A stretch of 64,000 nt of DNA, from contig NW_002060953.1 of assembly GCF_000150275.1 (NCBI RefSeq), forward strand, positions 1,872,310 through 1,936,309, read 5' to 3'. Positions within the stretch are counted from its first letter, which is position 1, and each line of letters starts with the position of its first letter. The translations under genes were made by a program, and so were the position numbers. Below the pieces are notes generated by a model. That model was given only the letters and a program-made list of their open reading frames with translations, did not search any database and was not told where the DNA came from. Positions 25,524 to 61,014 of the stretch are shown piece after piece. Source of the DNA: Trichoplax adhaerens. Taxonomy: Eukaryota; Animalia; Placozoa.

Positions 25524-27462
25524 TTAAAGCAGCACAGCTGAAAGGAAATAGATCACAAATAGTAATGCAATATTGACAGTTAAGCCGGAAGCACCATTGG
25601 GATACGCTTGACTGTCGGACATGGTCATTTTTTGAGATTTTTCATCAGGATAAGCATTGCAGTCCCAAGCCAAAGCAAGAACATTTTGAGTGGTAGTCGG
25701 TAAGCTATATATATTATAAAATGTAACGTTAACTTTTTCTTTCTATCTCAACAGCATTTAATTTTAGATACGGTATACTTTAGCGAAAGGATGGCAATGG
25801 CATCAAGCTATAATAGACGTTATCGCATACTGTCTACCTAGAGCAATTGAATACGTGCATTATGTCACATAATGCTAAAGTTTAAAGATAGAATTCTATT
25901 CTGTCTAAGCTTGAAAGTGTGATCGAGTTAGAATCTAAAAGTGTTCGCTAACAAATAGATAAAACGAACATCTTCTGCTTACAGAACGCCGGCAAAGGTG
26001 GCGTTAAAATAATAAAATTAGAGTGAACAAATGGCATGAAATGATGCATCATTTCATTTTACTTAAAATCAACTTTTCATGAGCGTATCTTCCTCAATTA
26101 ACTACGGAAATACTACGAAACTAGAATTGCCAACAATCACGCTTGATTCAGGACAGCAATACAACGCCTTAGATGCAAAGTATTTCATTCAACAAATTAA
26201 AAGTAATATAGCAAAAGCATTCTGCATTACTTACCAGGATATAGCACTTTGACATTGTTGCTTAGTTACACTGCTAACAATTTTTCGGCGATCAGTGCTA
26301 CAGAAAGGGATGGTAGTACACGACATCTTGATCCATTTGTCACTGCAAAAGGCAGAAACACCAGCGGCAGCATAGCTCGATTTCATTGAGGCAATAATCG
26401 CACTTTGTTGATACAAATTAGGTACAACCCACGACGGAAATGCAATATCCTTTGGCAATGGGCCGCAATACATGGAATTAATGCTAGCCAGAGATGATTT
26501 GACGCAGGTTGATAAAGTAAACTGTTGACCAGTAGATTGGCATATCGCTTGCGTATTTAAACCATTAACATTGACTAATTTACTACCGCATGTTTTTAAG
26601 CCACTACAGGAACGACTAAAATCCAGATAGGTAGCCGATTTGGTATCCGAAGAACACTTTGGCAATGTTCCCTTACATAAGACATCTTTTAAAGAATTTT
26701 GGCATGTAGTGGAAAGTTGTCGTTGCAAAATGTTAAAGTTGCTAATGATGAAATGTAAAGTTTTGGTCGTTCTCTTGATGATCGTAGCCGGAACCAGATA
26801 ATTGACATCGCAAAATGACATAATGCTTGCACTAGGTTTAACGCACTGATTAACATCTCCTTCAACCCAAACAGTCACGGAACCTGGTGAAGCTGCCCGA
26901 CGTTGCTGAAATAGATATGTAAAAATAAAATATTAAAATGGATAGAAATGCCTTTGATTAAGCAATGTCTTTCCAAGCAATCCTTTCAATATTTCTCAAA
27001 CTTTAAATTTTGCTTCCTATGGCAATTTATACTACTGTACAAACCAGTTGCAACTTTCATTTAATTACCATCGCAACAGATAAAGTAGTTTTAAAGTAAA
27101 ACTGAGAGTAAATATAATATACTGAAGCCTTCAACAACATTTATTTGAATGACTACAATGAGATTTTCAGGTCGAGCATAGTTTAGTGCCCATATTGCAG
27201 TCGATCATAAAGTAGTCACCAATCATACGTGCGGTTACTACTACGTTAATCTTACTATAATATGAAAGCTTTCATACGGGTTCTTATAGGCAATTTCCTC
27301 TGATGCTACTTTGCCTGAGTCTTGCTTGATAATATCGATAATTTCTTGAAGCAGTCCATGATGACCACTTAACGCGCTAAGATGGCTAGAATGGCCTCCA
27401 TCGACTACACACATACTTATTGCAATCCCAACTAACAAGATGATCGATGTCGAGCCTACCAT
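25524..27462 (-). CDS. Paralog A: secreted/GPI-anchored protein with two Frizzled-like cysteine-rich domains, 352 aa (exons 27462-27256, 26905-26235, 25704-25524)
   Basis: Signal peptide MVGSTSIILLVGIAISMCVVDG. Canonical GT-AG introns, phases 0 and 2; exon lengths 207+671+181 = 353 codons including stop. 16 conserved Cys (CQNSLKDVLCKGTLPKC; CSDKWIKMSCTTIPFC; WDCNAYP). C-terminus YPNGASGLTVNIALLFVIYFLSAVLL* has the form of a GPI signal. Confidence 0.88.
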
Positions 27463-27599
27463 GGTTTTTCCTTTGTCAATGAAGTAATAACTTTGTTATT
27501 ATAGCATTCCATAAATTGATTCAATTGAGGATCAACGCGTAAATTATAAAACAAAATAAATGTGTGCATTAAAACCTTAAATATCGACAGAGAGAGTGC

Positions 27600-28176
27600 T
27601 CAAGCATTAATATGAAAGCATCATAGATGAATTTAAATGTATCTATGGAAAGACTTGCATCTACTCTGAAATGCATGCCATGTCCGCCTTACTCAAGGTT
27701 ATAATAAGCATACTAGCGGTTGGACTGCAATAAAAGTAAAAGCATCCGTTCACTTTTATTTTTACTCCTGTATATACTCGTGCTTTTTTACCAGCATTAC
27801 AATTGTATAAGGTATGAATTCAAATATGTCTATGGAAAGACTTGCATTCACACTGCAATGCATACATGCTATCTGCGATTTACTGAAGGCAGTATTAAGT
27901 GCATTGCATAACAGCATTTGAACTGAAATAAATTACTGATAGGTTATAGAAGTACAAGCAACTATCCACTTTTATTCTTACTTTCTTGTATATATTTTAT
28001 CATTAATAGCGATGATGAACATGCAATGAGTGAAAGGTCTACTAATTTAAATGCACAATGTATGAATTCAAAGATATCTATGGAGAGACTTACATCTACA
28101 CTGTAAGGCATGCATGCTAAGCGCACTTTACTTAAGGTTTCATAAAGTGCATTCAAGCGCTTGGACTACAATAAAT
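27600..28176. repeat. Degenerate ~190-250 bp triplication immediately upstream of paralog A
   Basis: tctatgga(a/g)agactt(g/a)cat..ac.ctg.aa.gcat recurs at ~27642, ~27829 and ~28076; ttggact.caataaa recurs at ~27720 and ~28161. Confidence 0.75.
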
Positions 28177-31100
28177 TCAGACGAAACACGGCAAATATTG
28201 CTACAGGACTAGTAGGTTATAACAGGAAATTCATAGCTATAGATGTAAATTAGCAGATAATGTTAAGCCGAAAGTTATCGTCATCTGTAAGTTCAAAGGC
28301 CGCAATAGCAGAATTAGCGAAGCCAAAGGGTAGTATTTCAGGGTAATTTGAAGCTAGTTTAAATCCCCTATTTAAAAGTTTATAGGACAAGGTCGTACTT
28401 AAAAAAGACATTTTTAAGTCTTAGTCCTTCATTTTAATACTAAGCGAAGCAGTTAGCATACAGAGCTAAGTCCATGTTTCTCAAGTAAGAGTTGCAATAA
28501 CTTCATGTGCAGGATTTACTGTTTTAAAATGCGATCATTAGTGACATCACTTTATACTATCAAACACGAAGCAAAGCAGAATGTAGATAAATTTCTGAAA
28601 TGGCCGTACTAAACTCATAGCATAAAATCGAACACGATATTCTAACTAGGTAACGAAATTCTTCTAGCAAAAAGTCAAAATAGAAAACTTTACAAGTATA
28701 TTTGCCTGATGGTATTAGCTCGAAGTCATAGAAGCAACAGCGGACTTCTGAAATTCTTAAGTAACAACATTTGATCAAACTAACAGAAAACAAAATTCAA
28801 TTCGTAAATTAACTATGGCATTGATACACCCGATCAAGTTACGTGCCTATATTATTTTAAGAACTGTCTTAACTATGCTAAGCAAAAAAGTAATTTACGA
28901 GTGATGGCTTATTCAAATACTTCAACTTTCTTTTATCTATTTACTTCTCTATAATACTTCAACTATCAAACATGTTCAGTAGGGGTAACGTGGGAAATAC
29001 GATAACATAGTAGAAATATTTCTTCTATTTATCAGCATGAACAGCTATAAGCTCTTACTAGTCAATGCTAAAATGCAGTTCCAACTGAATTTTACAATGT
29101 ATGTACTATTGAGTAAGAGTTCGAAGTGCTGAATAAATAGCTTGGAAAAGTTTCAATTTTGCACCGACTAAAACCATTATTCCAATCGTATTTCAACTAA
29201 TGCTTTGTGTTAAACGATCAAGTTATTACATGAATAAGAACAACTATACAAATATCCTTATTCAAGGGTCATAGGCAATTCTGTGGCAACTTTGCATAAT
29301 AAATTCCATTAATAGTTTCGTTAGTTGTACGCAAAATAAGTATGTTGTAGTCACAAGCGACACCAATTAGACAGCAGCTATCACTATCTTAATTTACTTG
29401 ATATACTTACTTTTGGGTGAGAAAAATTAAACTTGTTTTCGCTATTAATGCTCCAAACTCTACTGGTACAAGAATTGAAATAAATCTATCGGTCAGTCAA
29501 TTCGAAATAAAGATAATTTCTAATAAGTTGCAATTACAATAAAATGCATATACCATATGTTTCTTCCTATCCACATATGCAAGGTGCTACAAGAAATTAT
29601 CGGATATCCAGTATTATCTTTTAGTATTTTATATGGATATTTAATGATTATTTAAACACATTACCGTAAAACTGCCATAAAGTGCAAGTAAATACAGTAT
29701 CGAACTGTGAACAAACTCAATCATACTGCTTACCTAAAAATCATATGGTGATGCTTTTATTCGTGTTTTCGTCATAATTACAACTTTATGCGGACGCAGT
29801 ACATTGCTTTCGTAACTTTACTTGTTTGGCGAAATCGATTTGTAGCTAGAACTACATACTAATATATAATATTTAGGAGGAGACTAAAGTAGGATACCGT
29901 GGCCTCTGATAAAGACCTGGAACACTCTGCAATAACGAATATTCAAAACAGCAAGATATAACATAGTAGTCTAGATCATCTATCATTCTTGTTGTAGCAA
30001 AATAAAAAGAAAGCTAATACAACTTCTTTTATCAATAAAATTATACTTTAACTACTACTAGTATAGGCTGATTCAAGCACTTATTGTTATTAATCCAAGA
30101 TCAAAATAAAGCTAGTTTTCTCCTCTTATTTAGCACTTCCTTTCTATTTAAATACCTATCTTTGTTAGACACAGTCTGCACAGTTAGTAGCAGAATAACT
30201 TCATTATAACTATTATAAAACCCATACATGCTATTAGATCTACGATTGCATAATCGATTAGAACACTTAATAAGTAACTTTTCTTGATTCATTTCCCAAA
30301 CCTTAGTGGTATGTATTAAAATTGTCAAAGTAATTACGGATTCGTATAATTTTGAAAGTCGAACCTGATATGTTGCAAGAGTACATAAGACATACCAAGA
30401 AACATTTCTTGCTTTGCATCCTATCAGCAAATTTTGGAGTTTATGAAGGTGAATTTATAATGTATGCCATCGATAAAAGTCCCAATCTACCCGTAGCCCT
30501 ATAAACCAATATTTTTAGTAAGAGGAAGCCGATTAAGAAAGCACAAAGTTGACAAGGATCAAGTTTAGACAAATTCATATTATGGTCTATTTTAATACCG
30601 TCAATCCTTTCAAGTTTAATAAATATCTTGAAACTTGGAAAATTTAACGACAGTGTGGTACGGCATGATATGCAATTATCCAAGACCGATTTTCATAATG
30701 TTATGCATTCTGAAAAAAAACCAGCATAATATACAGCTATGATTTTATCACGGTTTTTGGCCTAACTTGTTCATCATAACTTTCTCATACCGATTTGTGA
30801 AATGTTGTACAAACAGCGAGTCTGATGGTATTTTATACCGTTTCTTCGAGTAGACTGTATCTCAATATGATCAAGGATTAGTAAACTAAAACCTTCCCAA
30901 AAAGGAAGAAATATGTTTCTCTTAATCTTAGCTATGCATCTGATTCTCTACCACTGGCTTAACTATAAAGGAATTAGCAGCCTTTATAACGTTTCATACT
31001 TTGAACATACAGCAAATAGTATTCTATTTTTAGATATCTTTCCTTTAAAGTATGGAAACATACCGTAGTTGCAAGATTACCAGTTCTTTCTAAAAGAGTG

Positions 31101-32699
31101 CGAGTATATCTCGATATAGTTTGGACTGAACTGCTTCAACCTCCGGAAAAAGAAAGGAATATATAACCTCAATCCCGTCATTCTCAACGACTGGCTTTGC
31201 TACAAATTGACTAGCAATATCATAATATCGTATATTTTAAACATTTAGCTGATATCATCCTATATTCAGATATCTTTCCATTAACGTTTAGAAACCTAGT
31301 CGTAGGGCTTTTCGTTCTAAAAGTGATGGTCCATGATTCTAGCAAATAGCTTTCGATAATAGTTGTTAATGCTATAGTTATTTGATCCAATTCAAACAAT
31401 TATAAAATAAGGTAATCGATGCTAAAGAGTATTAAATTTAATTTGAGATACTCGTAAATGATGATTGTGTTTGGTGTTTCAGCGATATTGAATGATATTC
31501 ATTTATTGTCAATTCATATTCTTCTAGTACTGTCGTTCTTGAATAATCTAAAAACGATAATGAATTCCTGTATTTAAACTGCATTTTTATCATTCTAGAT
31601 CTTACCTTATGATTTGAATACATGCACAGGTGAAAATTGATCGACAACGAGCTATAGTAACTATATAGATATAAATAGACATAAATATCTGCTTTGATAA
31701 TGTAAACGATAAAAACCTACATAATGACATGGTGTAGAATAATAAAACTTATTATATGTTGGAAACAAATTCTTTGCTGATGACATTTCCTAATTTAAAT
31801 TGGTTCTTACGATCTCAGAAAATGCCATCGCTCGTACACCATAGCTCGCTAGATTAGAATGTGAGCATTATCAGTATGTTACATATTAATTAAATATAGC
31901 TATCTAAACTATAAGCTCTTGATGGTATAGATGAGGGCCCCTTCGTTGTAATAAGAAATGAGTGATTTAGTAAATAATTGCTGTTATAAATCTAAGTTAA
32001 ATAGGCAATATGGGGTAGAATAATTTATGTCAGAGATAAATTAGGTAATAATATAGGTAGCTTAATACATCATTAACAATAGCTATAATGTACTTCAGAT
32101 GATACGAGACAAACTGCTATTAAATCGATATTAATTCTCGCGATTAACTATAATAACTGGAATGTAATTATTTTCAAGTAAGGGCTACCCTGTAAGTATA
32201 GTTTTTTAACCACCACATTCACCTACTTAATTGAGAACAGTAACCGTTTAAAAATACAAATAATCACAATGATATAAGAGTGAAGTCTTTGTAGTTTGTA
32301 TTCGTGCGCTGGAATTATATTCGAAATCTGCGCAAATAATCTAATTAAGGTAAGGTGAATAAGTGACAATCATTTTTTATTTTAAGAATAGAGTCTATAT
32401 TTAAGGATACTTTATCAATTCATATTTTTAATAGCATAGCTGGTATAATGAGTCGATATAAAGGTAAAAGGAACGATTAAATTTGATAGATAATAATAAA
32501 AATGAAGGAAATACTTGCATTTGAAGGGTTAAGATCAGCTTTAAAAAATTTATTACCCTCTGCTTTTAGTCCATTGATGTTACGCAAAAAAATTCCAGTA
32601 GAAACTCTTATTTTGCATATCTTCAAAGAAGAATACGAATATAAGTTAGAAAATTCGTTGCCTTGCGAATTTAAAGTATTGATTAAGAAAATAAGGGAT

Positions 32700-32900
32700 G
32701 AATTCTCACTTTTAAGGCGTAAACAGAATATTGCATAATGGACGATCACTATCGATTCCATGCGGAAAATTTCTCACTTTTAAAGCGTAAATAGAATATA
32801 GCATAATGGGACGATCACTGTCAATTGTATGAAAAAAATTTGTCACTTTTAAAGAGTAAATAGAATACTGTATAACGAGATCATAAATGTTAATTGTAAG
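32700..32900. repeat. Tandem repeat, ~68 bp x3
   Basis: t(c/g)tcacttttaa.g.gtaaa.agaata...cataa at 32704, 32772 and 32841. Confidence 0.85.
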
Positions 32901-35900
32901 ATTGAAATCAAGAAAATTTGTCCATCCTCAATTAACGGGGGGGGGGAGTGCTATTATCAAGGAATTGCTTCCGCATCGTTTTCAAATCAACGATTTTAAA
33001 AATAACTAATATAGGCAACCCTATATATTTCTGTAATTAACCATTTATAGACAGTATATAGTTATCCTTTATTGGTTTCCAGACTAGTGGCGTATAAAAC
33101 CAAGACAATGTTTCTGTCTACTGTTATATTAACTAAGAGCATCTAATTTGCTTCATATATTTTAAGTTCTATATTGGATGGCACGAGAAAATAAAAGGCC
33201 ATTCCTGACTACTGTTGTTGTTAATAAAATAGTTCCATTGGCTTTATCGTATCGCTGTGTGGCATAGCGCTTCAGAAATTCAATCAATAGCTAGTCCTGT
33301 TACTATATTCATTAAAATCTTCATTTTTATATTGTTAAGGATAGATTACAGTCTTGGAAGACAACTCTCTTCGTAATCCTTGAAATCCTGTCATTTGCTT
33401 CGTTATTAAGTTTCTTCTTTCTTCTATTGATAAACTTCCTTTAGGCATTGCCTTTATTGACATGAAGCTGAATTGTCCAATATTTGTATCCTATTTGAAT
33501 AGATTTTAAAGTGATCTCTATTTATTAGGTTCCTTTGATATTGGCTTTATAAACGTAAAGCAATATTGTCCAATACTTGTATCTTAAACTAAATTATAGA
33601 GGGCTAGCGAACTATTAAAAGGATAAGACTTACACATATTTATCATCTTTATCAATCCAGAGTTATACAACTAAGCTAAAAGTAACTACAATTTCTTTGA
33701 CGACGTCTTATAATTATCCTCGGTAAATACTTGTAAAAATATTTTTGTAAATTTTATTATATACTTTTTATTCATCATTTTCTATGTATTACCTTCTTTA
33801 CACAAAATAGAATTGCCAGGTATTTGTATTCTATAGAATTATCAATTTTAAATGGAAGTACACCTTTGAAAAGAAGAGATTTAAAATTCTAGTAAACCTC
33901 ATTTTATTCAATAAAATTCTATATTAACGCCATCATTAAATGTAATTTTTTCGGCAATAATTCGTTTCGTCTTGGTAAATAATCTATAAGAATATTTGAT
34001 TTAATTCAAGAATATATTTAGATGAATTTCAATATTAGTTTACCTCTTTATAATTATGTAATTTAGCCATAAATGGTTTTAGGCTATTGGCTGTTATTTC
34101 CATCGGTCTTTAGCTAACAATCTTGTCGTCATCTTGTCCTTGCATTTAGCTAGCTTGCTTCATTTTTTCCTTTTTAATATTGAAAGTAAACCGGTATTAT
34201 CCTTGCTGATTATTTCAGACGATATATTATACCATTAATTACGCTGAAATAGTGGTCAATGCCTACAGCTAGGCATCATCTTATTCGACAAGTGATCTAT
34301 AAGACCTATAGGCAATTAAAGATAAAGGAAGCGGGCAATATATCAAGAATAACTTTCAATTGGTTCTCTTAATCTGAAATTACATTAAACATAGTTACTG
34401 TATCCGATTTTATCCAACAGTAATCATTCTGCGACAGAATCAATCATTTTTCTGCCGCCCGATATTGCAATTACGTCAACAAATATCGTACAATCATATT
34501 GAAAACCGAAATTAATATAATTAAATCAATTAAACGAGGACATGAAAGAATAATTATAGAACTAAAATACATTTCTATTCATATCATGGAATGCGTTACT
34601 TGTCGGCGAGATCAATTTTACGTAAGACAGTGACAAATGCTTAATCTTTCAAATTGTAGAAGAAAGATATCTTCAAGACATAAAATTGCTTATAGTCACA
34701 TGGTTATATTCCTTGATTATATCATCCTAAGGCATCCATTGTCTAATTAATAGCTTAATAAACGAAAGATAAACGAGTATTATGATTTTAAATACTGACA
34801 CTAATAAAACTAATCACAGGTGCTGTTGAAATAAATGCCAAAGGCATAGCTTCTGCTTTACTATTGTTATCATTATTTACCGTAATTTATCATGTCATGG
34901 CATCCCTAAATCGGACTCTATCCGAGTGCTAGCGATTTATTAGTTCCTTTATTTTGCTCCAATACAATAGTGTCTTCGTTTCGCCTATGCCATTTATCAT
35001 GCTAAAACTATTTATAGTATTTGGTGTATCGCAATAAATTCAACAATTCACCACAGCCTACCACTTATTTCCGTTGTATCGTGAATTGAAGACGTTATCT
35101 CTAAAGTTGATATATACCCAATTCGAACGTGAAAAACGGATTTCTTATTTACTTTAGGTAAGTCTGGATTAAAATAAGGATGAGTGAGTAGAATTTTTTT
35201 GATCATACGAGTAATACTGTTTGCTACTCATTATCGGACTTGAAGTTGATCTGTAACAGTATAACTAAATTTGGATTATTTAAGCACGTTAAATGTGATA
35301 ATAACCAAACAAGTAATCACGGAAACTATACTATAAGTATCTATATGACAGATAAAAGTTATTCCACTGGTGTAGTAGCGCATATGTTATACCATACGTG
35401 TGGATCTATTGGGAAGATTAATACTAATTTGCCTACAATATAGCAGGATATGAAAAATTTTCTGATTGTCAACTAAAATGTACCGCTTACTAAATATTTA
35501 ATTATGAAACTAAATTATAAGTTATTACCGATACCCAAATGTAAAAGTGATTACCGGAGGATTTAGAATCGTACTGAAACGTAGACCAATTTGGCTAAAC
35601 TAGATTACAGGTCGTAGGATAAGAAAGCAATTATCAATTACGAACTGAAATAATATTCTGGGGATGCATCATGAACGATCTTATTTGAATAGCTACTGCT
35701 ATGATATTCTAATAATCTGTTATATTGTATTAGAGGTTATTTAAAGATAATACGTATCAGCAACACATATTCTTGCTTGTAGAAACACAATTCATTCATG
35801 GATTGATTTCTATTTTGTATGTCCTACGAGGACAAAAATAATAATGTCTAGTATAGGCTGACAAATGTCATGTAGTAAGATGTTTTAACCTAGAAATAGA

Positions 35901-38900
35901 TTTTCAACTGATGATATCGTCCTAGGTGCTTTCTATGATTTGATAATTGGAGTTCTGATAAATTTCCGTTAGCTAGTTTCAAGTGTAATGAAATATCTTC
36001 TAAGTATATGCTAGTTCGATTGAGTATGATCTCAATAGCTACTTATGATTAATTAGTAATGATAAAATCTTTACAAAGTTAAGCTTAATGTACACAAATT
36101 CAGGTGTCATAAATAAAGCTAATTTCTTTCTTGAATAATCCGACAATTCAATACTTATGCACGCATCGACATTAAACAAATAATCTTTCTTATTTAAAAC
36201 TCGATCAATTTGGCATACTTTCTATTAGGTATTATGCTACAACGATAACTGATTAATATCTTTACATTCATTTACAATACCGTGTCATAAAATCTAGTAA
36301 ATTTCAATAATACAACTGTTAAACTAGCCAAGATAGCGTTAAAATAATCTATGCTTTCAAGTTATAATTTACATATTTCCTGCGGACCAGTTCGAAGTGA
36401 TGATATATCTTATCGAGATGTTTCAAAGTAATAGATTTGATGTTGTTACTAGTCATCGCTAATAACGATAGATTGCGTTAAGAAGCTCTGTTCAGCATAC
36501 GAGTAGTGCTAAACAACGTCGATTTAATCGACATGGGAAATTCATATTTTAAACTGGATCATAAATTAAATGCATCGTTCTTAAGTAGCTTGTTACGAAT
36601 GATATCATTAATTTTGGAATCTGAATTAAAGGACTCATTTCTTGTTTTTAACCGAATGAAATTTTTGGAAGTCCCTACTAATAACAAACGACTGTTTGCA
36701 TTCATATTTCCTCCTATTATACTTTTCATATAAATACTGTATGCTCCTTTATGCGTACAGGCGAATTCAGAAATTGTTTGATGATGCAAATAATAGCATA
36801 GGCTCCGACATTGTAACGTTTCCTTTCGATTGATTTTGAGGTAAATGCATACATTATCCACATCTAAAGATTGATTCTTTTCTTCCATTTTCTCTATTTA
36901 TATTGCGTATATTTTATTGCTATATAACAGCATGAATCAATTTGACTTTCACAAGAGCAGTTAAACCGAGTGTAGCCATCTTGAGATATTTGTATATTTA
37001 TTTCTATAAATTTCATGCGTGAGCTTTTTTGATTTATTTATAAAAATGGTGGTTACGCGAAGTATAAAAAAATCAATTCTAAATAGCAAAATACTAATTA
37101 AAATTAACCGATAATAATAAAGCAAGATATTGATTTTGCAATTTTAGTTCTATGCCAGCTACTATAAATTAATATATATTACATCATATGATTCAAGTTT
37201 TACGTTTAAGATAGTAGGTATTTCTAATAATAAGTAAAGTATTGGTTATTTTATATAATCGTTTTTGATATTTATGGCATATGCTGTACTAATACTATTA
37301 AGTGCGAAAGTAAACATTCTAGCTGATATAATAACATTATGCACTATCAGATCTTTTTAGCTTTCATAGATCATGCAATCTTTTCGAACGGATTACTTCA
37401 TGTAAATTTAAGAATTTACTCACTACTGAAAGTTTTAGTTAAGATATTTCTATTCACCTTTTTCCATACTTTATTAGCACTAACGATGGATACTAGTTGA
37501 ACAGTGGTTAAGAATAAATTATTTAATTTAAATCACTTTTTTAAAACTGACATCAAGTTTTAAGTGTTTTTTTTCTATCATAAGTTGAGAGAGATAAACG
37601 CCTCGTATATTGTACGGATGAACACGTTAATTTCTACAAGTTTCAGTGTACCTGAAAATTCATAATCAGATTTTTGAATATTAATCTTGATAAATGCTTA
37701 TAGCAACCTGGAGGATTACAAATTTTTATCAGTCAGTTTCAGTACTAATTGAGGATTAAAAGCAGAATAATATGTACTAGAGTATATATATAATTCCTTA
37801 CATTAATTTTCCAAACCGATTCTACTCAATAAAATAATAAAGACCAATGAAAGAAGGATAGTACCGTATATCATTTCCATCGGAGTATCGCACGAAGAAA
37901 GCAATTTTATTCTATTATACAGCTGTCAAAGATATTGTATTGCAACCATAGTCCATCGCAATGACGTCGCTAATTCGCTTTGGATTCTTTCTCATAATCC
38001 TTTATTCTTGCTCAACAATCATTAACTTATAAAATATACATACCTAAAAATAGGATAAATCAATTATGCCGTTCGGTAAAAGACTCTATATTCTCTATAA
38101 GATATCGATCTATTGATCCATAATAACAATAGTGAGGGTTATGCCTGAAATTATAGCATTGTTAACAAATAGCCATATTATTATGGATTTGATGAACAAA
38201 AAGTGATCGATAAAGGTTACAGGACAGGATCTTCTTTATATCTGATATTTATTAATCACGCTATGATTACGAGTAAAGCGATATATTATAATTGAAAGCG
38301 TAATGCGTTGATCATTTCTAAAAATGAAATTTCACGAATTATCAAGAGTATATTAATAATTATAACTTAGGGTTAAAATTCATATGAATATAATCTATCC
38401 AATAAATGTTAGTGCATTATCAATTACTCTCAGCCGGAATTTGATGGACATTTCCTAAACTGCATGCCGAACTTGCATAGGCAGAACAAATAAAGGTCTA
38501 TATATATTTACTTATAGTATTGTGTCATAATTTATATTATATAATTAACTCCTCGGCTGTCATCAAACACAAGACGAGCCCTGTATTATTCATATTTCAT
38601 TACTCATTACTAATCCATCATTTAATTAAGTACTCTGGTCGTAGTTTTTGCTCCCTAAAATAACTTGGCTATATTCTTAGGACCTTTTCTTTGATTTTAT
38701 GTACAATCAGGCAGCCAAGGTGAAAATAAATGTCCTTCAAAGATCGTCTCTAACGTACCATGATATAGCAGTAAAATTGCTTATTCGAGCATAGCATAGA
38801 TTTACAATCTAACTTATGTCTTGTTCTTACGGTGTTGCCTTGTCATTAGGATAGTTTAATAAGAACAGTAGTAGCTGGTATAGAGAATATCCATAGTTGT

Positions 38901-44416: not shown

Positions 44417-46077
44417 ATGGCTTCGCAAAACTGGATAGCGGTTATTTTAATAGCGACATTATTCTTCAGCAGCATTAAAGGGCAAATTGGCCACCCCTCA
44501 ACTATCTTAAGCAGTCATTTCAATTTGCTGGATAATACAGTTCATTTAATGATGCAACAACCAGTCGCTTCTAATTTTACCATGGAAAAACGCTCTTTAG
44601 AGGTAAGATTGAGTCTCAACCTTAAAAGTTGATTACCCATGTTGACAGCTTGACGAATGATTTACGATTCCTTATTGATTAGCATGCTGCTTGATTCTAA
44701 GGTTGGTAACTCAAGTTTAGAGCTTTGATGGATAATTTATGATAGTTTATTGATGGGCAGGCTGCTTGACTCTTAGATTAGCTGCTCATGTTTAGAGCAA
44801 TAACGAATAATTTAGGATACATAATTGATTAGCAGGCTGCTTAATTCTACTTTTCTATAGATCTCTTTTTTCATACAAACAGTTTTGATTCTTTCACTTT
44901 TATGTAACTAGCAGCAATGAAAGGATTGCATGACAAATTATAAATCAACTAAGATACTAAATGTATATAGTTAGATGAGCTACTAGAATTGCAATTCAAA
45001 ACTCGTATAATCTCAAATACCAAAATAGCTGGAAAACAGAATTTTCAATACATGAATACATTCATTTTAACTTTGTTTCTTTGTAGCAAACAAGAGAAAT
45101 CGCCAAGCCAAATGTCACTGTCTGGATTGCTGGCGATATCGATTCATGCAGCCTACCTGATGAGAACATCAGATCCTTTTGCAAGATCGAATATAAAGTT
45201 CCCACAGTCATAGCCAAGAGGACTTCTCGACTTTTTCAGTTTATTATCAAAAATTTCAAGATTCTAAAATCGCAAATGTTGACTGATTGTCTGTACAGCT
45301 TGAAGGAAGTGCTCTGCAAAGGAACCCTACCTCAATGTTCTAAAGATACTGTAACCGCTTCCTATTCAAATATTCAACAAGCTTGTGCACAAGTGCGTTG
45401 GTGTACATCGTCTTTTACTAGTCTTACAGATCAAAGTTGGATGCAATCTTGTCAAGTTTCTGGTCAAACATTTGATTTAAAAGTATGTAAGAAAGCTAAT
45501 GTAACCTCTATTAACCTACAAAATTGCGGTCCATTACCCAAGCAAATTACATTTCCTACATGGATTATTCCAAATATTGAGCAGAAATCAAAAAGCAAAG
45601 CTCTAATTCGAAGAAGCTATAGTCATGAAGGCGTAAATTCGCGTTGCATTGATAAATGGGTTAATATGTATTGCTTAAGTGCTCCATTTTGTAGCAGCCA
45701 TCACAATAAAATTGTAAGTGGAATTACGCAACAGCAATGCCAGTCGGCATTAAACTGGTAAGGGATACGACAAACTAATTTCTACTTTCTGACAATCTTT
45801 CTGCTGTTGACAGTTTTCCCCTTTACCCTTAAATATCTATCATGACAGCATTCTAATTCCTGCACTTCCATGACAACATTTTAGCTTACCTGATCGAATT
45901 CGAAAATTTCTACTCTTAACGGTCGATTGCAATGCGTATCCAGACGAAAATTCCGAAAAAGAAATTATGTCAAGTGAATGTGCTTATTCAAATGGTACAG
46001 AATCGATCGAAGGCGATAACTTGCGATGGCTTCTTTTATATTTTACAATCGTTTTATTAACCTATATAATTTTGTAA
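44417..46077 (+). CDS. Paralog B: secreted/GPI-anchored double Frizzled-like CRD protein, 349 aa (exons 44417-44602, 45087-45757, 45885-46077)
   Basis: Signal peptide MASQNWIAVILIATLFFSSIKG; ...EKRSLE|QTREIAKPNVTVWIAGDIDSCSLP. Open frame through all 16 Cys; TG|C Cys codon split by the phase-2 intron. Tail VDCNAYPDE...AYSNGTESIEGDNLRWLLLYFTIVLLTYIIL*. Exon lengths 186+671+193 = 350 codons. Confidence 0.9.
44660..44850. repeat. ~75 bp x3 degenerate repeat in paralog B intron 1
   Basis: ttgat..gca.gctgctt.a.tct at ~44675, 44750 and 44824. Confidence 0.75.
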
Positions 46078-47994
46078 AGGGAAGCTCTTTCGTGTAGCAG
46101 CTTACGCGTAGAATTAATTATTTTTCATCACTTAAAAAGATAAAATTAAAGTAATCGCATATAGGAGAGAGAAAGTAGCATAGTATTTTTATAAAATAGA
46201 GTAGGTCTCGTTGTTATTTCTACTGAGATGTGACATGAAATATTTAAGCTAATACTCAACTGTTCACACTATTAGTCAGCTAGGAATCGTAGCTATCAAT
46301 ATCTAAATTCGTCGTAGACATCCATTTAGAGTCAACTTATTGTCGTAATTTTCCTCTATATGGAAAAAATTACGAAAAAAATAATCTAGTGAATTTTATC
46401 AGATACATTTGATCTATTGGAGAATAATTTTGAACTAAATTAAAGTAAAGTTATTTAAAAAAAGTAAATGTTTACTCTAAATGCACTTAAATCATATCTT
46501 TGAATATTGAAATAGATTCTGTTTTATATCGAATTTACTTTGCGTTTGCCCTTAGTTAAATTAATACTCTTGACAGTCGCTATGATAGCATTTTCTTGGC
46601 TTCTGCAAATGCATTAATTGACAAGATATCTATTATATTAATAGCTATAAGATGTAGACATATCTTAATGGATGAATCTTATTTATTAATTTCCTATTAG
46701 TGACTTACTTAACGTAATAGTCTGATGTATTGATAGATGAATAAATGACATAGACAACTTCTATCTGATTTTAAAGGGCATTGGATGAGCAAGGAATATT
46801 GTAGACTTCCATACTCTACTCTTATTTAACAAAATGTGCTACTTATATGCTAGTTTCCATTATCGTTCAATGCGAACAGTATAGCATAGTCTAAAACGTG
46901 AGAGAAATATTCATGAACTAAGGGAGAATAAAAATATCTATAGGATTAGCTATTGCATGAGAAACTAGTAGTTTATCATAGGAAGATTAGTATAGGTGCG
47001 AATTACAAATCTTTGAACACCCGGAAAACGATAGCCTGATTAATTTGCTCCGTATATCGCATGAGTTGATCCTTTTGCTAGAATAACTATCTATCATTAC
47101 TAACTTATAGTGATAATTTCCAGTTGTATGGATATTCTACGCCATCATCATATCAGTTACTGTTTCAGGATATTCAACTATCTGAACATAAGAATACTTC
47201 AAAATAACACTGTCTACATTTTATTCCTTTCCGAGTAGCTTTATTACTTTACCAACAACATTTATAAATATCCGGCATTGAAAGACAATCTATAATATTT
47301 TTTTGCAGCGAAAGAATCTGGCTGAAATAAATTGTACACATGGCATTGCAATTAAGCAAGTACCCAATATTATGCCTCGTAATATTGATAGCTCCCTAAT
47401 GAAATTAGTTGTGGCCTTTAAATCGATTCAGTATAGAAAATACAGGCTAAATGGGCATCCATGAATGTAGGCGTTTCGGAGCATGAATATTTACACTGCT
47501 CTAATCTTAGATGCTTTTGCAATATTAATCAAACCTTGAGTATTAGTTATAGCAAGTTTTCTTTTTCATTAAAGTAAGTGAGGATATTAGTATTCTAAAA
47601 TCATAGCAATACTTATCGATAGAAAAGACTTAGGCAATAAGAACGATACGGTAGCTTGAACGATCATTCACGAAATAATGTCAATGTTGCCGGCTAGAGT
47701 TTGTCCGAATGCTTATTCTTAAAAAACATGGATTGAGAGTAGCACTAACTTCTCGGAATGTGGATTGTAGAGGCAATATCTCATAAATTAGGAGTAATAC
47801 AAATCATGAGGTAAATTGAACAAGATATTAAAAAAATACCATGCCTCTGTTACCAATTAACATTGAATTAGCCAACTAACGTGCAATATACCTAAAAAAT
47901 ATGCTCTACTAAATAAATTAATAACATGGGTACCATCGTAAATTATATCTATTGCGAAGAAACTTAAAGCATATGGAAAGATTTCACCTAGAAT

Positions 47995-50670
47995 CTATAA
48001 AGAAGTGGAGATAAAATACCCTGCAAATAGTAACAGCAAATTCATCATAACTCTGAGAGCACTATTTGTTGCTGAGTAAGCCTGTTGGCTAGACATCATT
48101 AACTTTGTGGACTCTGCTTCAGGAAAGTGAGCACAGCTAAATGATTGCTCAAACCCTTTTCGAAAGACCGCTGGCAAGCCAATGCAAGAGAAGGAATTGT
48201 CGTCAAGAACCAAAACCTTAACAGTTGATAAATACTACTTCGTGTTTCAACTAGAATAAAAATAATAATCATTTACCATTTTATGCCTTCTTGGCTTTGC
48301 TCTTTGGTGACTCTACCAACAATCTTCGAGCCATCAGCGCTACAAAACGGAACAACATTACAAGTAATGTCAAGCCACTTTGTCGTACAACTTTTGCTTA
48401 TAATGGCTTGCATGAAACCGGTCTTTAGGGTAGCAATATTTAGTCTTTGGTAGGGTATATTAGTTAACATCCAAGTAGGAAATTGAATATCTTGAGGTAA
48501 ATGACCTCAGGATTGAGCTTCGATGGCTTTTTCTTGTGTAGGTACACATTTAGCCAAATCGTAGCGCTGATCGGCATCAAAACTTAATGTTCCAGTGTAA
48601 CTTTTAGAGTTGTAGCCAAAAAATGGCCAGCAAGAGCCGACTGTCGTGCAGTCTGTGGTATAATTCTGATAGGTAAAGGATGTTGCATCAGCAGAACATT
48701 GAGGTAAAGCGGATTTGCACATCATATTCTTGACGGCTTCAGCACAAGCCTTGGGTAACTGAGCCTGGATCATGACATAGCTGTTCATTGCAAACATTAA
48801 AAATCGCGATATTCGATTAAGGATAATGGTGGGAACTTTATAACTGATACCACAGAATGTTTGGATGTTACTGCCAGGTAAACTGCAAGAGTTTAAATCA
48901 GTTGCTACCCAAACTGTCACTTCATGAGAATGTCGTTTAGCCATCGATCGAGTGGTCTAAATAAGTAATAGTTGAATTCTTTAAGGAAGTTTAATGTAGC
49001 CAACATTGACGAGAAGTCGAGATTTAATGAAATTAAACGTGTAACCCTCTACTTTACCCTATTTTTTAATGCACATCTGCAGATTAAGGTTGTAAAATTG
49101 TATAAATCGAATTTTTGCCGAAAAGACACTATATCAGTAAGGCAATGTTGTAGTCGGCTTAAAGTCGAAATTATCTACGAGAATGAGTTATAATTTGACA
49201 CTGCTTGACCACAGTAAAACTATGAAATTATTGGGTCAAGGATACAAGTTTTGGCATAGGAAAATAGACTTGGCTGAATATTAGATTTACACTTTGCAGT
49301 AGTACTTTTAATTTTGGAATGTTAAGATTTGGATTTGTTTTACAGAGGTCGAAACGATCATTTTCTTCCACTTAATCATCCCAGTCCTTCATTGTCATGC
49401 ATAACTATCAACTTCTAAATTGATAATCCTCGAAAGATTATAGCTAAGACTTTCATCGATTTCAAGGATTATCAACGATGTTGATGAATAATGCTCATTT
49501 TACATTTATTACAATTTTACGAGCATGTCAAAATTACGGAAGGAATACACGTAATCATTGAATAAACTGTAAGTGATTGGTAGACTCGTTCTGAGAGGTC
49601 TAGATCGATTTAGCATTGCACGCCTCAAAGATGAAGTAGAGAATAGATTACTTTAAATGACATGAATGGAATGTATAGCGAGTAGTTTCTGATATATTAA
49701 GAAATGGATTATTTTAACCTATGAGGATGAATTATGCTCAGTTTGGATCTATTAAACTTTGACATGTAGACATGAAGATTACCGAAGGAAAAGAAGAAAT
49801 CATTGAATAAAATGCATGCGATTTGGAAACTCGTTACGGAGTAATCTCAATGAATTTAGATTCCATGTTTCATTGAGAAAGCTACCTCTGCTTTGCAAAA
49901 GATATAAATGGAAAGAGATAATTTGAGCCGATGTTGATGGATGATGCTCTGCTTGGATTCATTAAAACTTTTACGAACACATGAGGATTACGGAAGGAAA
50001 TAAATGAAAGAATTCAATGTAGTAAAATGCTTTCGATCTCAAGACTTGTCGTTGAGTAGCCTCGATCAATTTCGATGTGATGCTTAGCTGAGAAGTTAGC
50101 TATACACTCGTTATAGACGAAATAGATTATTTGAATGAAATTTAGTTAAATGGGAGTTAGAGAAATTTTTAGTGTATGTTTAACCTGCAGTATCGATCCC
50201 ATTTCAATTTTATGATTATATCAAGAGTGTGTAAGATAGACTGAAATGAGTTCTTCTCTCTTGTGCAAAAATCATCTTTGTTAATCGGTACAACTTGACT
50301 AGTCTCTTTGCAAATAGTTTTGAGAAAATTAATCTGTTATTGCACCTAGAAATATTCGCACTGGAATAATATAAAGTAAAATAGCACCATTTCATACTAA
50401 TTAGAATGGTGGCTGCAGTGGTAATTCTTGGCTTTAGAATGAGACTTTATAGGTAGTACGTAAAACTAGCAGTTTGCTTGTCATATAGACTGCCATCACT
50501 TAGCAGACTTTACCTAAAATGATTACTTTGCTCTTCAACAGAACATCCTTGACTGAATTTAATAACATAGAACCGCCATCTTGGAAATGATCCTGACTGG
50601 AAGCACGGGCAGGATGGCTGCCAAATAAATTAGATATGACTAGAACAGAATGAAGTATTGACTTGAACAT
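47995..50670 (-). pseudogene. Paralog C: probable young pseudogene of the double-CRD GPI family (candidate exon 1 50670-50527; exon 2 48956-48277; exon 3 48178-47995)
   Basis: Exon 2 is homologous throughout (VTVWVATDLNSCSLP...CAEAVKNMMCKSALPQCSAD...FPTWML...CTTKWLDITCNVVPFCSAD). Lesions: in-frame TGA at 48509-48507 replacing a conserved Cys; two other Cys replaced by Ser; exon-3 acceptor reads cattGG|cttgcca instead of AG. The GPI-like tail (ATNSALRVMMNLLLLFAGYFISTSL*) is still open. The exon 1 assignment is less certain. Confidence 0.8.
49440..50140. repeat. Degenerate ~210-245 bp triplication in paralog C intron 1
   Basis: attac(g/c)gaaggaa at ~49533, 49778 and 49987, with similar downstream context (gaataaa...actcgtt). 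Confidence 0.65.
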
Positions 50671-52205: not shown

Positions 52206-52889
52206 CCTTTTATGGCCTCTATGCATTGCTTTTTACTGGCTACGTTAACTATTCTTTTCTAGTCATGGCCGCAAAATGAAAAGTTTCAGACAAGTGCAAA
52301 TAGCCCAAATACTTTTGCAACGTTGAGAAGGTCCAACAAGATTTGCTATGTTGTGAACTCTATTCTATACATTTATGATGTGATCTAGAATAGTGGGAAA
52401 AATCCAGGTAGGAAATGTGACATTCTTGGAAATTGCTTGCATGTCTGATGTAGGACTGGCGAATTTAATGAAAGACAGTAGCTATAATTATATTGTCGGC
52501 TTGTAGTCGCTAGACAACTATTCTCGTAGCCAGCTAAATAACCTTCCCCTTGATGGAGGTATTTCTTCAACTCGACGCAAGTTTTGGTCATATTTTGGTA
52601 AGCAAAGGCTGAAGAGTCAGCTGAGCATGAAGGTAGATAACTTTGGCAAAGGCAGTTTTGAGTAGTTTTTTTATACTATGGTGATAGTTTTCGAATCACC
52701 ATCAATTCATATGTGCTTTTAACAAATGAATAAATATCGTTCAAAGCTTAAAAGGTTGCAACACTGTATGTTTTAGGTAGATTACAATGTAGCCGGAGGA
52801 TAGCTTCTGGTCGAACACAAGATTCCCATTTCTCCAAAGACCAATATACTAATGTTATATTCAGTTCGTATATTATACTTGCGAAGAGG
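52206..52889 (-). pseudogene. Paralog D: degraded pseudogene (exon 2 remnant) of the double-CRD family
   Basis: Acceptor tgtag|CCT at 52889 and donor GG|gtaaa at 52206. Translation across three frameshifts and four stops gives ESCVRPEAILRLHCNL...LCQSYLPSCSADSSAFAYQNMTKTC...SCLATTSRQYNYSYC...TCKQF/KNVTFPTWIFPT...SQRCKSIWAICTC/SFCGHD*KRIVNVASKKQCIEAIK, collinear with paralogs A-C and E. Confidence 0.88.
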
Positions 52890-54877: not shown

Positions 54878-54915
54878 ATATTTATATTTGTATTTGTATT
54901 TATATTTATATTTAT
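54878..54915. repeat. Imperfect (TATATT/TGTATT)n hexamer microsatellite
   Basis: tatatttatatttgtatttgtatttatatttatatttata. Confidence 0.7.
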
Positions 54916-57053: not shown

Positions 57054-60000
57054 TTAATTTCCAGTACAATTTATAAGAAGATGTATTAATTGATGTGGTA
57101 CTAAGAATAACAAAATCAAAGCGGTAGCATTGATTAACCCGATTTGGAAGGATAACGAAGATGTTCCATTGGTTTCAGAAGTTACATTTGGATAGTAATT
57201 GCAGAATTGACGTTTACGTAAATTGATTCTTGTCTTTTCTGGCAGACTAATGATTAAAAAAGCAAGATTAGATCAATAGCTAGAGTCTAAGGAATGATTG
57301 GAATACACATAGTATGAGTTTACAGTATTTTATCATCTAGAGTTATTGCCATGACATTGAATGTGGCGACTTAAGTAGGAAGTAGTTGAATAGCAAAATA
57401 AGGATAAAAGAATTTCATACGTAATCAATTTAGAAATGATGAATTTTTGCAGTTCTATACGATGAAGTCAAATCCATACTGTGGTTTACGAAACGTTATA
57501 AAGCTGGAGAAAAAAATTATAAGTCAACATTGAATTTGGTTTCTTTCACTTTCTTATAACCACCAGTATTTTCTGAATAATCAACTAGCTTCCATGAAAG
57601 CTACCCGAGGTATTACAATTGGGGTTGCTCGTGATAGCTTATAGTTTTTAAGCTTAATGGCGGTCTTACTATTTAATGATATTCAATATAATCAATGCAA
57701 TCCACAATGATCAATTGGCTTTCATTCAAACCGTCTGATAGGGTGCAATTGAATTTTATTTCGATAGCTTTTAATTGTTAATTTAATGACAGCAATATCG
57801 ATCGGAATGTTCATGCAACTTGTTCACTAATATTCAATATAATCAATGTTATTTAGAAGGCTCAACTTGCTTGCATTAGAGATATCTGATATACTAATAT
57901 TGAACTTTATCTTGATTACTTTTAATTTTAAAGCCCATTAACAGTCCCTATTGATCGGTAAGCTCTTGCAATTTGTTAGCTAAGGTAATATTCGACATAT
58001 TTAATGCGATCCAGAATGATTAAGATGCTTCCAGTTAAGCTATCGGATATACTACAATTGGGCTTCATCTTGATATCTTTCAGTTTCAAAGCTTAATAGC
58101 AGTTCTATCGAACGGCATTTCAAAGTAACTTATTTACGAATATTCAATACGATAACGCAATCCTGTAAAGAGGGGATCTATGGAATACCCTAGAAAAGGC
58201 TATTATTAAGGTAAGGCATTGCTAATAGAAAGGCTTTGGTTAGTATGAGTAATCATAATGGAGTTGATGAATTCTTCTACACTATTAATGACTTCATTTC
58301 GCTAGTTGCACAAGTATTTTACATTAAATATAAATAAGTTTATGATGCCTGCATAAGCTATAAGAAGCTTAAATTAATTTTTTTAAACTTTACATGCCTA
58401 AAACGTCTCATTTTCTTGATAACTAGCAAATTGTTTCAATTTTGGATCAATTACTCCATCTTTAGTTATTAGCGCCAGAATATGTTTTAGTCACCATCAA
58501 CTTGATTCATATTCAATTTATCACTGCGACAACTAGTAGAAATGGAATATGAAGTTATTCACTTACCAAGCAACAGCATTTTGACATTGCTGCCAGTCAA
58601 AAAATACTTTAATATGTTTTCGATCCTGATCACATACTGGAAATCGATGGCAGAAGAACTGGGCTGCCGTATCCATACATCTTTGGGTGATACCATTGGA
58701 TTGGGATATTATACTCAAGAACTCTTCTGTATTATCAAGTAGTTCTGGCATCTTCTTAGCCAATGCAACAGGAAAAAGGAATCCATCTGGATATGGACTG
58801 CAATAATGATGCTGGATATTGGTTCGATTATAAGCAGTACAATAATCAACTACCACGTATCTGTGACGTGTTGATTGGCAGGCAGCGATTAGATCAGCAA
58901 AAGGCAGATTAATTTCATTAGAACATTGAATCAATTCATGGCATTGATCTCGTAAATCGAACGTTATGTAATGGGATAAATCATGAGAGCATTTTGGAAA
59001 CGAAAATCGACACCAAATTTTACGAATGATAGAGAAACATCGGCCTAAAATTGGTTTTTGATAATTTAATGTTCGTATGAAGTCATACACATAATGTTTT
59101 TTGTAAAAAGAAAGTAATACATTAGGAACATAATAATGTAGTGAGCAAAATTGTTGTATATTATTATCCGGTTTGCTACATCCTTCTGTTTCGCCAATTA
59201 CCCATTCTTGTGTTTTATTTTGAAATAGCTCGTTGTCTTTATTAGCCTAAAAAAAAGAATTGTCAATTTTTATGCCTATATTTTGTCAATGATTAAGGTT
59301 ATCTAGTTATATCATCATAGTCTATTCCAAGTATTGTTGTCTTGGATAGCGATCATTACTGTTGCATTTCATTACCACTTCTAGTTCATTTTAGAATGAA
59401 TAAGCAAATAACAAGAATTCTATTACGCCAACGGACGATTTTATTTTAAAGACATTGAGGAAAATAAGCTCGATTCGATATCAAGTATACCATAAATGGG
59501 ATTAATCTTCAGTGTGAAGAGTTTTCAAATGCATGTGGAGATACATGAAGGAAATGATATTGTTCTTTTCTAACATTAAATTTGGCAATATGTTTAAAAA
59601 CGAGCTAGTAGTCAGAATATATTTCGTTTGCCGCTTAGATTCTTTTGCCAATAGGTAAATACATACTGTAATATCGCAGAATATTGGGTGCATGTATTAA
59701 AATGCTAGTACCTGTAGTATCCGAAATATTTACAAATCCATGGATTTCCAGTTGGCTAAATCTAATCACCCTGGCCTTTTCGATTTTGATTCTTGACTAG
59801 ATACTACCTCGATAACTACCGTATAAGGAATACTCAAATAAAACCTATGAACTATTAAACTTGAGCCTTCATATTACAGTAACTAGATAGTTATTACTAG
59901 ATAGATGATAGATCCCTTTACATAACCCTTATTTTACTGCAAAGTAGCCTATTGGATAACTATTGAGAATTGGATTGGTATAGTTCAAAATTGCCTAGAC

Positions 60001-61014
60001 AAAATATAATCACGCTGTTATACAGACTAAGCGCAAATGCATTAACATCAACTATTGTAAGCTGGTATTAGATTTAAAATCAATTTGTTTACAAATCGCA
60101 ATAGCCATTTTATAAGAACGTTTTGTAATTTACATGTGATTAGCTAATTGAATCTCTATGAATTGGATTAATATAATTTAAAATCGAGAGAGATAAAATG
60201 GGATGTTGTCCTTTCAAGAGCAAATGCAATAACTGTTGTAAATTGGTATTTGGCACTTTCCACTAGTGATAAAGTAAGTCTGCACACGTCAACGCTTACG
60301 AAGAACGCATCTTACTGACTTATAGAGACGAGATGAGCTATATCAACAAATAGTTCAGTTATAACGAACGAATACTGTAGTCTACGTAATAGTATTACAT
60401 CAAAATCAATTTTTACGTGGATCACAACTAGGCTTATTATAAAATAGTTTTGTAATTTACCACTAATGAGGTCATTGGATATTAATTAAAAATTAAATAT
60501 GATTAAGGACTAAAGAGAAAGAGAGAAATAAGATCTAACGTTCAATGGACTAAGCGCAAACAGGATAATTATTGTAGATTGGTTTTGGATTCAAAATCAA
60601 TTTCATCGTGGATTACCATTAGCCTTTTCGATATTATGGATAAGGTACTTGATTTGATTTATCTAAACCATTAATAATAATAATTATCACTAATAACTAA
60701 ATGTAAATAATGAACTGAAGATACCCCTAACAAAATCGTTGAATACCGAAATTAAAAATTTTTTTTTAATTGTTATAGATTTTAAATACGAAAAGTCAAC
60801 TAACGTGATTGTAAATGTGCAGACTTTCATTGATATTTTTCATTATATTAAAAGTTGCTTCTGCAAAGTCTCCATGGTGGTCGCCTTTCTTCAGCATAGA
60901 AGTAGAACCAGCGACAAATGGAGCCATGTTTAACCCTTGATAGCTGATCGAAGATGGTATCAATAAGGTCAAGTTGACGAAAGTGATGGTCATCAGTCGT
61001 ACAAGGGACATCAT
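57054..61014 (-). CDS. Paralog E: most divergent intact double Frizzled-like CRD, GPI/membrane-tail protein, 360 aa (exons 61014-60805, 59246-58567, 57246-57054)
   Basis: Signal peptide MMSLVRLMTITFVNLTLLIPSSISYQG; ...HIYNH|ANKDNELFQNKTQEWVIGETEGCSKP. All 16 Cys present (CFSIIRKIWCRFSFPKC; CMDTAAQFFCHRFPVC). Exon 3 reads cattag|T-CTG-CCA, giving CLPEKTRINLRKRQFCNYYPNVTSETNGTSSLSFQIGLINATALILLFLVPHQLIHLLINCTGN*. Exon lengths 210+680+193 = 361 codons. Confidence 0.87.
57670..58150. repeat. Degenerate ~153 bp x3 repeat in paralog E intron 2
   Basis: atattc(a/g)a(t/c)a recurs at ~57679, 57830, 57988 and 58140, with similar intervening blocks (tctgata...aattgaa.tttat.t.gat..ctttt). Confidence 0.7.

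Follow-up and report, generated by a model that had tools for sequence, protein, structure and literature searches.

A tandem gene cluster in Trichoplax adhaerens encodes putative membrane-tethered proteins with two divergent Frizzled-type cysteine-rich domains

Introduction

Frizzled-type cysteine-rich domains (CRDs) are the lipid-reading modules of the Wnt, Hedgehog and sterol pathways, and their origin and diversification before the Bilateria are poorly known. To our knowledge, every characterized Fz-type CRD (those of Frizzled, sFRP, Smoothened and ROR/MuSK, and the N-terminal domain of NPC1) has a helical groove that accommodates either a hydrophobic ligand or a protein modified with lipid. 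Here we describe a group of related genes in a 64,000-nucleotide stretch of the placozoan Trichoplax adhaerens (contig NW_002060953.1, positions 1,872,310 to 1,936,309; hereafter “the window,” to whose numbering coordinates refer). Five copies (A to E) had been recognized there in an earlier, sequence-only reading. The encoded proteins are predicted to consist, in order, of a signal peptide, a short and poorly ordered N-terminal stretch, two domains of eight cysteines each, and a tail resembling a glycosylphosphatidylinositol (GPI) attachment signal.

The closest described proteins are those with the Fz CRD (PF01392; Frizzled, sFRP, Smoothened, ROR1/2, and MuSK). With these proteins the Trichoplax family shares a helical fold, a C-x8-C-x6-C core and the sequential arrangement of Fz cysteines 1-5 and 7-9; both the profile and the structural comparisons point to this group only. 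The family differs from them in having eight instead of ten cysteines per domain, two domains back to back, and a GPI-type tail, and it lacks any kinase or kringle part as well as the seven-transmembrane domain of Frizzled and Smoothened. The sFRPs and Sizzled are alike in being small, extracellular, based on an Fz CRD and devoid of a signaling part (sFRP3 and Sizzled are among our structural matches), but sFRPs are soluble and join one CRD to a netrin-like (NTR) domain, whereas the Trichoplax proteins have two CRDs, would be tethered to the membrane, and gave no NTR match in Pfam scans. Corin and other multi-Fz proteins (amphioxus CORIN, P0043; Oculina, P0038) also have more than one Fz domain per chain and are found by the family profile. 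These, however, are long multidomain proteins (859-1306 aa) matched in separate stretches, whose Fz domains do not form an adjacent 16-cysteine unit and which have no GPI-type end; they count as generic Fz matches.

Two further groups offer more distant parallels. Folate receptor/Juno, glypicans, RECK and, as a functional analog, GAS1 are GPI-held proteins whose ligands are vitamins, small hydrophobic molecules or morphogens modified with lipid, and which lack a signaling domain; the likeness is one of working mode only, with no sequence or structural match here. The N-terminal sterol-binding domains of NPC1, NPC1L1, and NCR1 belong, as remote relatives, to the same fold group and are weakly similar to the first repeat of the Trichoplax proteins (Z 3.9, 3.4, and 3.4 in the fold comparison below), but these scores are far below those of Fz-type CRDs, the cysteine pattern differs, and the domains are part of large polytopic transporters.

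Two Divergent Frizzled-Type Domains

The 16 cysteines of the family fall into two repeats of eight, as the sequence-only reading had proposed. When the family alignment was split after the eighth cysteine and the halves were compared by hhalign, repeat 1 matched repeat 2 with a probability of 92.7% (E 6e-8) and with the cysteines in register, and the protein is therefore best described as an internal duplication of an eight-cysteine unit. The only Pfam family that recurred among the members was Fz, found in 17 of 20 at E ≤ 0.1 (best 9.9e-9), and two annotated T. adhaerens members, P0003 (34.5 bits) and P0004 (33.4), pass its cut-off of 32.1 bits. A profile of repeat 1 searched against the sequences of the PDB gave 22 matches at E < 1, 20 of them Fz-type CRDs; a single-sequence search of the same database gave none. 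Compared by hhalign with the three best canonical Frizzled CRDs of the genome, repeat 1 matched with a probability of 83% (E 8.9e-6). In both profile alignments the sixth and seventh cysteines of the family align to Fz C7 and C8, and a residue other than cysteine stands at Fz C6, which argues that the C6-C10 disulfide is absent. The eight cysteines of each repeat would thus represent, by alignment, Fz cysteines 1-5 and 7-9 instead of the canonical ten.

Predicted structures lead to the same group. An AlphaFold2 model of P0001, the annotated protein of gene A, was computed from a 23-row alignment and reached a predicted local distance difference test score (pLDDT) of 80-97 at residues 80-325, with low confidence elsewhere; repeat 1 modeled alone reached 86. 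The models show a mainly helical CRD fold. We compared them with 48,161 representative PDB chains using VIA-align. For the whole protein, the top 12 chains were all Fz-type CRDs (Z 6.7-4.6; first unrelated chain 3.7), with Smoothened at 6.7 and 6.2, MuSK at 6.1, Ror2 at 5.7, ROR2 at 5.5, FZD4 at 5.4, and Sizzled at 5.2, down to sFRP3 at 4.6. Most of these matches lie on residues ~200-320, that is, on repeat 2, which within the whole model scores Z 6.1-4.6. For repeat 1 alone, the top 11 were again all Fz-type CRDs (Z 6.0-4.1, 93-111 of 119 residues aligned), followed by NPC1-type N-terminal domains (Z 3.9-3.4). The AlphaFold models thus place Fz-type CRDs at the top, at modest Z-scores, and a single fold family leads the predicted-structure ranking, in agreement with the sequence evidence. 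Profile searches, the internal-repeat comparison and the predicted fold together show, at the level of profiles and models, that both domains are divergent Frizzled-type CRDs that have lost the Fz C6-C10 disulfide. The two tandem Frizzled-like CRDs proposed earlier are therefore supported.

A Tandem Cluster with Three Intact Genes and Two Decayed Copies

A tblastn search of the window with exon 2 of gene A returned exactly five copies, at the places proposed before: A itself (26237-26905, minus strand, self-match), B (45087-45755, plus strand, E 1e-68), C (48282-48923, minus, E 4e-47), E (58569-59204, minus, E 4e-26), and D (52211-52855, minus, E 9e-7). These copies form a single tandem cluster within a Trichoplax multigene family. 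Three are intact genes (A, B, and E, with all cysteines present and an undamaged main exon), and the other two have decayed. The genes have a common design, namely a signal-peptide exon, a phase-0 intron, exon 2 (671 nt in A and B, 680 nt in C and E), a phase-2 intron that splits a cysteine codon, and exon 3, which carries the motif CLP-x12-C-x2-YP followed by N-G-A or N-G-T and a hydrophobic end. This design, including the split codon and the terminal motifs, stands as first read: the model of A matches an annotated protein exactly, and the introns of B are seen in RNA.

Transcript evidence comes from contigs of four public RNA runs from separate studies, mapped on 44400-50399, and shows that at least gene B (plus strand) is transcribed and spliced as modeled. 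The first coding exon of B (44404-44602) contains the ATG at 44417 and the signal peptide; the contig match begins at 44404, immediately after an AG. Exon 2 (45087-45757, 671 nt) encodes both CRD repeats and corresponds to P0154/P0006, and exon 3 (45885-46077) encodes the GPI-type tail. Both coding introns are GT..AG and are spliced as predicted, the joint 44602|45087 being present in contigs of runs X9 and X14 and the joint 45757|45885 in contigs of runs X9 and X11. Because the second joint is seen in RNA, exon 3 belongs to the B mRNA, and the B transcripts recovered across it include the tail. The 3′ untranslated region extends to at least 46655. One contig (run X9) continues upstream with at least 215 nt unlike the adjoining genomic sequence, the end of which maps to 44004-44033, directly before a GT donor at 44034, so B has a non-coding 5′ exon spliced 44033|44404. 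Translation of B starts at 44417, as first read, or at 44029, where the 5′ exon has an in-frame ATG. The T. adhaerens model, which starts at 44417, agrees with the RNA contig, whereas the ATG at 44387 used in the H2 annotation (P0154 begins MPFNF) falls inside the intron 44033|44404. Gene B corresponds to TrispH2_010511 and to T. adhaerens TRIADDRAFT_59591.

Gene A (minus strand) has the same three exons. Exon 1 (27256-27462) holds the start codon, the signal peptide and the low-confidence N-terminal region in 69 codons, ends in phase 0, and equals residues 1-69 of P0001. Exon 2 (26235-26905, 671 nt) encodes the eight cysteines of repeat 1 and most of repeat 2 (six cysteines plus the TG of the split codon); it ends TG|GT, so that the cysteine codon reads TG|C across the phase-2 intron. 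Exon 3 (25524-25704) supplies the last base of that codon, LP-x12-C-x2-YP, the N-G-A small-residue site, a 15-residue hydrophobic end (mean hydropathy 2.9), and the stop codon, with nothing beyond. The spliced model matches the annotated protein TrispH2_010510 (P0001, 352 aa) exactly. In UniRef, P0001 is labeled “SUEL-type lectin domain-containing,” a label without any supporting Pfam lectin match.

Gene E (minus strand) begins with a signal-peptide-like exon of 70 codons (60805-61014), followed by exon 2 (58567-59246, 680 nt), in which all 14 cysteines are intact. Its 3′ end has two candidate structures. Exon 3 as proposed by the sequence-only reading (57054-57246) has a pyrimidine tract and AG acceptor, LP-x12-C-x2-YP, N-G-T, and a weaker hydrophobic end. 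In the public model of E (P0015), the acceptor lies ~35 nt past exon 2 (58531-58567), and the protein stops 15 residues later, without the last cysteine and the tail. Based on motif conservation and the good acceptor, exon 3 at 57054-57246 seems more likely, and the 3′ end of P0015 is probably an annotation artifact.

Copies C and D (both minus strand) have decayed. C retains a signal-peptide-like start (exon 1, 50509-50670) and an exon-3 homolog with a hydrophobic end and an unclear splice acceptor (47995-48198). Its 680-nt exon 2 (48277-48956) is broken, with a TGA at 48507-48509 in the place of a conserved cysteine codon and an AGC (Ser) at 48294-48296 in the place of another. Since an independent database record (P0035) stops at the same point, the TGA is not an assembly error. 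No contig of the four RNA runs maps to C; these are contig data, and such absence proves nothing. D (52211-52855) is an exon-2 relic with seven in-frame stops, a pseudogene.

The window as a whole is AT-rich eukaryotic DNA (GC 29-44%). A and B are separated by ~16 kb (28000-44000; GC 29-35%) with no open reading frame (ORF) longer than 110 aa, and tblastn detected no family relics in this interval. Two satellite-like tandem arrays are present, one at 21072-21930 (units of ~120-263 nt in 3-5 copies, with spurious long ORFs on the minus strand) and one at 23944-24767 (units of 125/247 nt in 3-7 copies, 91% matches).

A Large Family with Relatives in Cnidaria and Sponges

The cluster had been taken as a set of five genes, but it proved to be one of several. 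A six-frame search of the whole genome gave 36 matches on 10 contigs, at least 30 of which are exon-2 copies, with approximately nine copies clustered on contig C1412, five on C1409, and pairs on C1393 and C1408. A sixth copy with an intact exon 2 lies ~10 kb before the window on the same contig (C1404:1862056-1862724), so the cluster extends past the window. Exon 2 measures ~660-720 nt across the family and always ends in the split cysteine codon. In an alignment of 20 members, identity ranges from 19 to 62% while all 14 exon-2 cysteines are invariant. A maximum-likelihood tree places the window copies in a 13-member clade with C1412 and C1393 copies (Shimodaira-Hasegawa-like approximate likelihood ratio test, SH-aLRT, 99), and a second, more divergent group (C1409 and others) is weakly joined to cnidarian sequences. 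E and D sit on very long branches, that of E measuring 3.0 substitutions per site.

The Pfam Fz model matches 22 places in the genome, where canonical Frizzled-type CRDs score 99.7 and 78.2 bits and the double-CRD family 23-30 bits. On these profile scores, the family appears as a divergent branch that supplies many of the Fz-like domains of the genome. Two other tandem groups of Fz-domain exons, at C1414:10945006-10949816 (five places) and C1378:322392-329655 (three), score 26-38 bits and are not reached with the protein of the double-CRD family; they may represent further lineage-specific Fz-CRD families.

Twelve of 19 members carry a basic motif (R-x-x-R or K/R-R) at the junction of exons 1 and 2, 15-22 residues ahead of the first cysteine (for example, 26890-26905 of the window, minus strand), and similar motifs are present in the Xenia, Oscarella and environmental homologs described below. 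A proprotein convertase might cut here and so remove the region encoded by exon 1, or the motif could form the basic N-terminus of the mature protein.

Word-indexed homolog searches returned only 2-5 proteins, and the phyletic range therefore comes from an exhaustive profile search of 1.84 billion representative proteins, which gave 227 matches at E ≤ 1e-3 and 98 at E ≤ 1e-10. Named relatives that span the whole two-domain profile come from an octocoral (Xenia sp.), Hydractinia symbiolongicarpus, and the homoscleromorph sponges Oscarella pearsei, O. lobularis, and Corticium candelabrum. Across 14 full-length proteins aligned from Placozoa, Cnidaria, and Porifera, 15 of the 16 cysteines are invariant and the sixteenth is present in at least 90% of rows. 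Many more matches are ORFs of ~240 aa on environmental eukaryotic contigs (ENA/Logan) that end in W, a residue produced by reading through the same TG|GT donor. Environmental homologs (L032:3741-4140; L031:3720) have the same phase-2 intron in the same cysteine codon, and L032 continues downstream with an exon 3 that encodes C-x2-FP, a Ser/Thr/Pro-rich stalk and a hydrophobic end. The proposal that the family is lineage-specific is thus not borne out, given the 16-cysteine, two-CRD relatives in Cnidaria and homoscleromorph sponges. Judged from these sequence comparisons, the family is old and not specific to placozoans, and what is seen here in Trichoplax is its expansion to ~30 genes.

In the literature searched, we found no paper that describes a double-CRD family or carries its gene identifiers, and the family is not mentioned in two placozoan cell-type papers or in the supplements consulted for one of them. 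The view that it is undescribed holds to this extent, whereas some members already bear the automatic label “FZ domain-containing protein” in UniRef. The finding can be summarized as a familiar domain arranged in a minimal, tandem and probably membrane-tethered architecture that the papers searched do not describe.

Membrane Attachment and Proposed Function

The proteins are ~350 aa long and have hydrophobic stretches in the signal peptide and at the C-terminus only, with no seven-transmembrane part after the CRDs. The N-termini contain hydrophobic, signal-peptide-like stretches, in support of the secretory signal proposed earlier. At the C-terminus, 11 full-length public models together with A, B, and C have 15-20 hydrophobic residues at the very end, preceded by small residues (N-G-A, N-G-T, or similar) and a polar spacer. 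GPI-attachment signals are known to combine small residues, a polar spacer and a terminal hydrophobic stretch with nothing after it. These features, recognized here by eye and from hydropathy values, support the GPI-type signal suggested before, and GPI-type tails also occur in the Xenia protein and in several unnamed relatives.

Since lipids or proteins modified with lipid are the ligands of known Fz-type CRDs and no signaling part is present here, we infer that the family members are surface-tethered binders of hydrophobic ligands. The mature protein would be held on the outer face of the plasma membrane by its GPI anchor and would act as a binding module without a signaling part of its own, with the capture or presentation of lipidic molecules on the cell surface as its most likely role. 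A broad set of ligands, not Wnt alone, would be expected because the family is large, diverges to 19-46% identity between paralogs while its cysteine frame stays invariant, and undergoes birth and death, as the pseudogenes C and D illustrate; the ligand range may have diversified rather than served the few placozoan Wnts. A tandem multigene cluster of double divergent Fz-CRDs, held by GPI and capturing or presenting lipidic ligands, is the explanation that we consider best overall and moderately probable. Several observations weigh against it. A scores 20.5-22.1 bits (E 2.4e-4 at 22.1), below the Pfam Fz cut-off, and B and E were not matched in the Pfam Fz scan. Repeat 2 alone shows no significant similarity to the canonical Trichoplax Fz CRDs (hhalign E 0.37). 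All structural Z-scores are below 8, and Foldseek gave no significant E-values for either model, with Fz CRDs leading the plausible rows. Finally, the GPI call was made from simple sequence features, and the Oscarella relatives carry a transmembrane helix in place of a GPI-type end.

The pattern of family evolution could also suggest variable molecules for recognition or adhesion (of microbes, food, or self and non-self), in which the CRD pair would only provide a rigid framework of disulfides, and the variable surface on it would bind proteins or glycans instead of lipids. Recognition families would be expected to show what is seen here, namely tandem clusters, gene turnover (C and D), long branches such as that of E, and sequences that share little identity apart from a fixed cysteine frame; the conservation of the architecture from sponges to placozoans suggests instead an old core function, and we regard this alternative as unlikely, while leaving it some real weight.

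Dedicated Wnt modulation is a less probable role, which we would not expect to be the principal one. The proteins would then be membrane-tethered counterparts of sFRP that sequester the Wnt palmitoleate or present it to Frizzled, a view that draws some support from the Wnt-binding CRDs matched by fold and by profile (Frizzled, sFRP3, Sizzled, ROR2, and MuSK) and from the existence elsewhere of GPI-anchored Wnt modulators (RECK and glypicans). Against this, ~30 fast-diverging paralogs plus pseudogenes are a large number beside the few Wnt genes reported from Trichoplax, the genome already has the canonical Frizzled CRDs with their far higher scores, and the C6-C10 disulfide of Wnt-binding CRDs is absent from the family.

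It is quite improbable that the hydrophobic C-terminus is a transmembrane anchor, or that the proteins are secreted, rather than GPI-anchored. The Oscarella homologs do have a clear transmembrane helix with a charged cytoplasmic tail, the tail of E is atypical, and four public models (P0004, P0008, P0011, and P0015) have no tail. Those tail-less models, however, look like annotation truncations, and in the 11 full-length models the hydrophobic stretch, after its small residues and polar spacer, is the very end of the protein. We rejected as exceedingly improbable a superficial Fz likeness in which the 16-cysteine ectodomain is a single domain of another kind (folate-receptor-like or GFR-alpha/GAS1-like), since, even though folate receptors also have 16 cysteines and a GPI anchor and a folate-receptor cluster stood at rank 5 of an Atlas feature search (score 0.81, a lead only, as all Atlas matches were below 0.9), Pfam gave no match to Folate_rec or GDNF, the top 50 structural matches included neither a folate receptor nor GFR-alpha, and hhalign showed a clear internal repeat.

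Implications

The minimal architecture of two adjacent eight-cysteine CRDs with a putative membrane tether has been kept from homoscleromorph sponges to placozoans and is strongly expanded in Trichoplax, where the double-CRD family makes up a large share of the Fz-like domains of the genome. A broader and more speculative proposal, which we put forward tentatively and consider doubtful, is that the double-CRD unit is an ancient non-bilaterian (sponge, cnidarian, and placozoan) class of surface receptors absent from Bilateria, which would serve membrane-tethered sensing and capture of lipids or sterols and would be older than, or parallel to, the Wnt-Frizzled system. The ~30 placozoan genes might then form a chemosensory, nutritional or immune repertoire for the lipids of food and microbes. 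Should lipids or Wnts prove to be the ligands, the family would offer a simple system for studying the ligand specificity of CRDs, and a handle on how an animal without nerves senses or takes up hydrophobic molecules.

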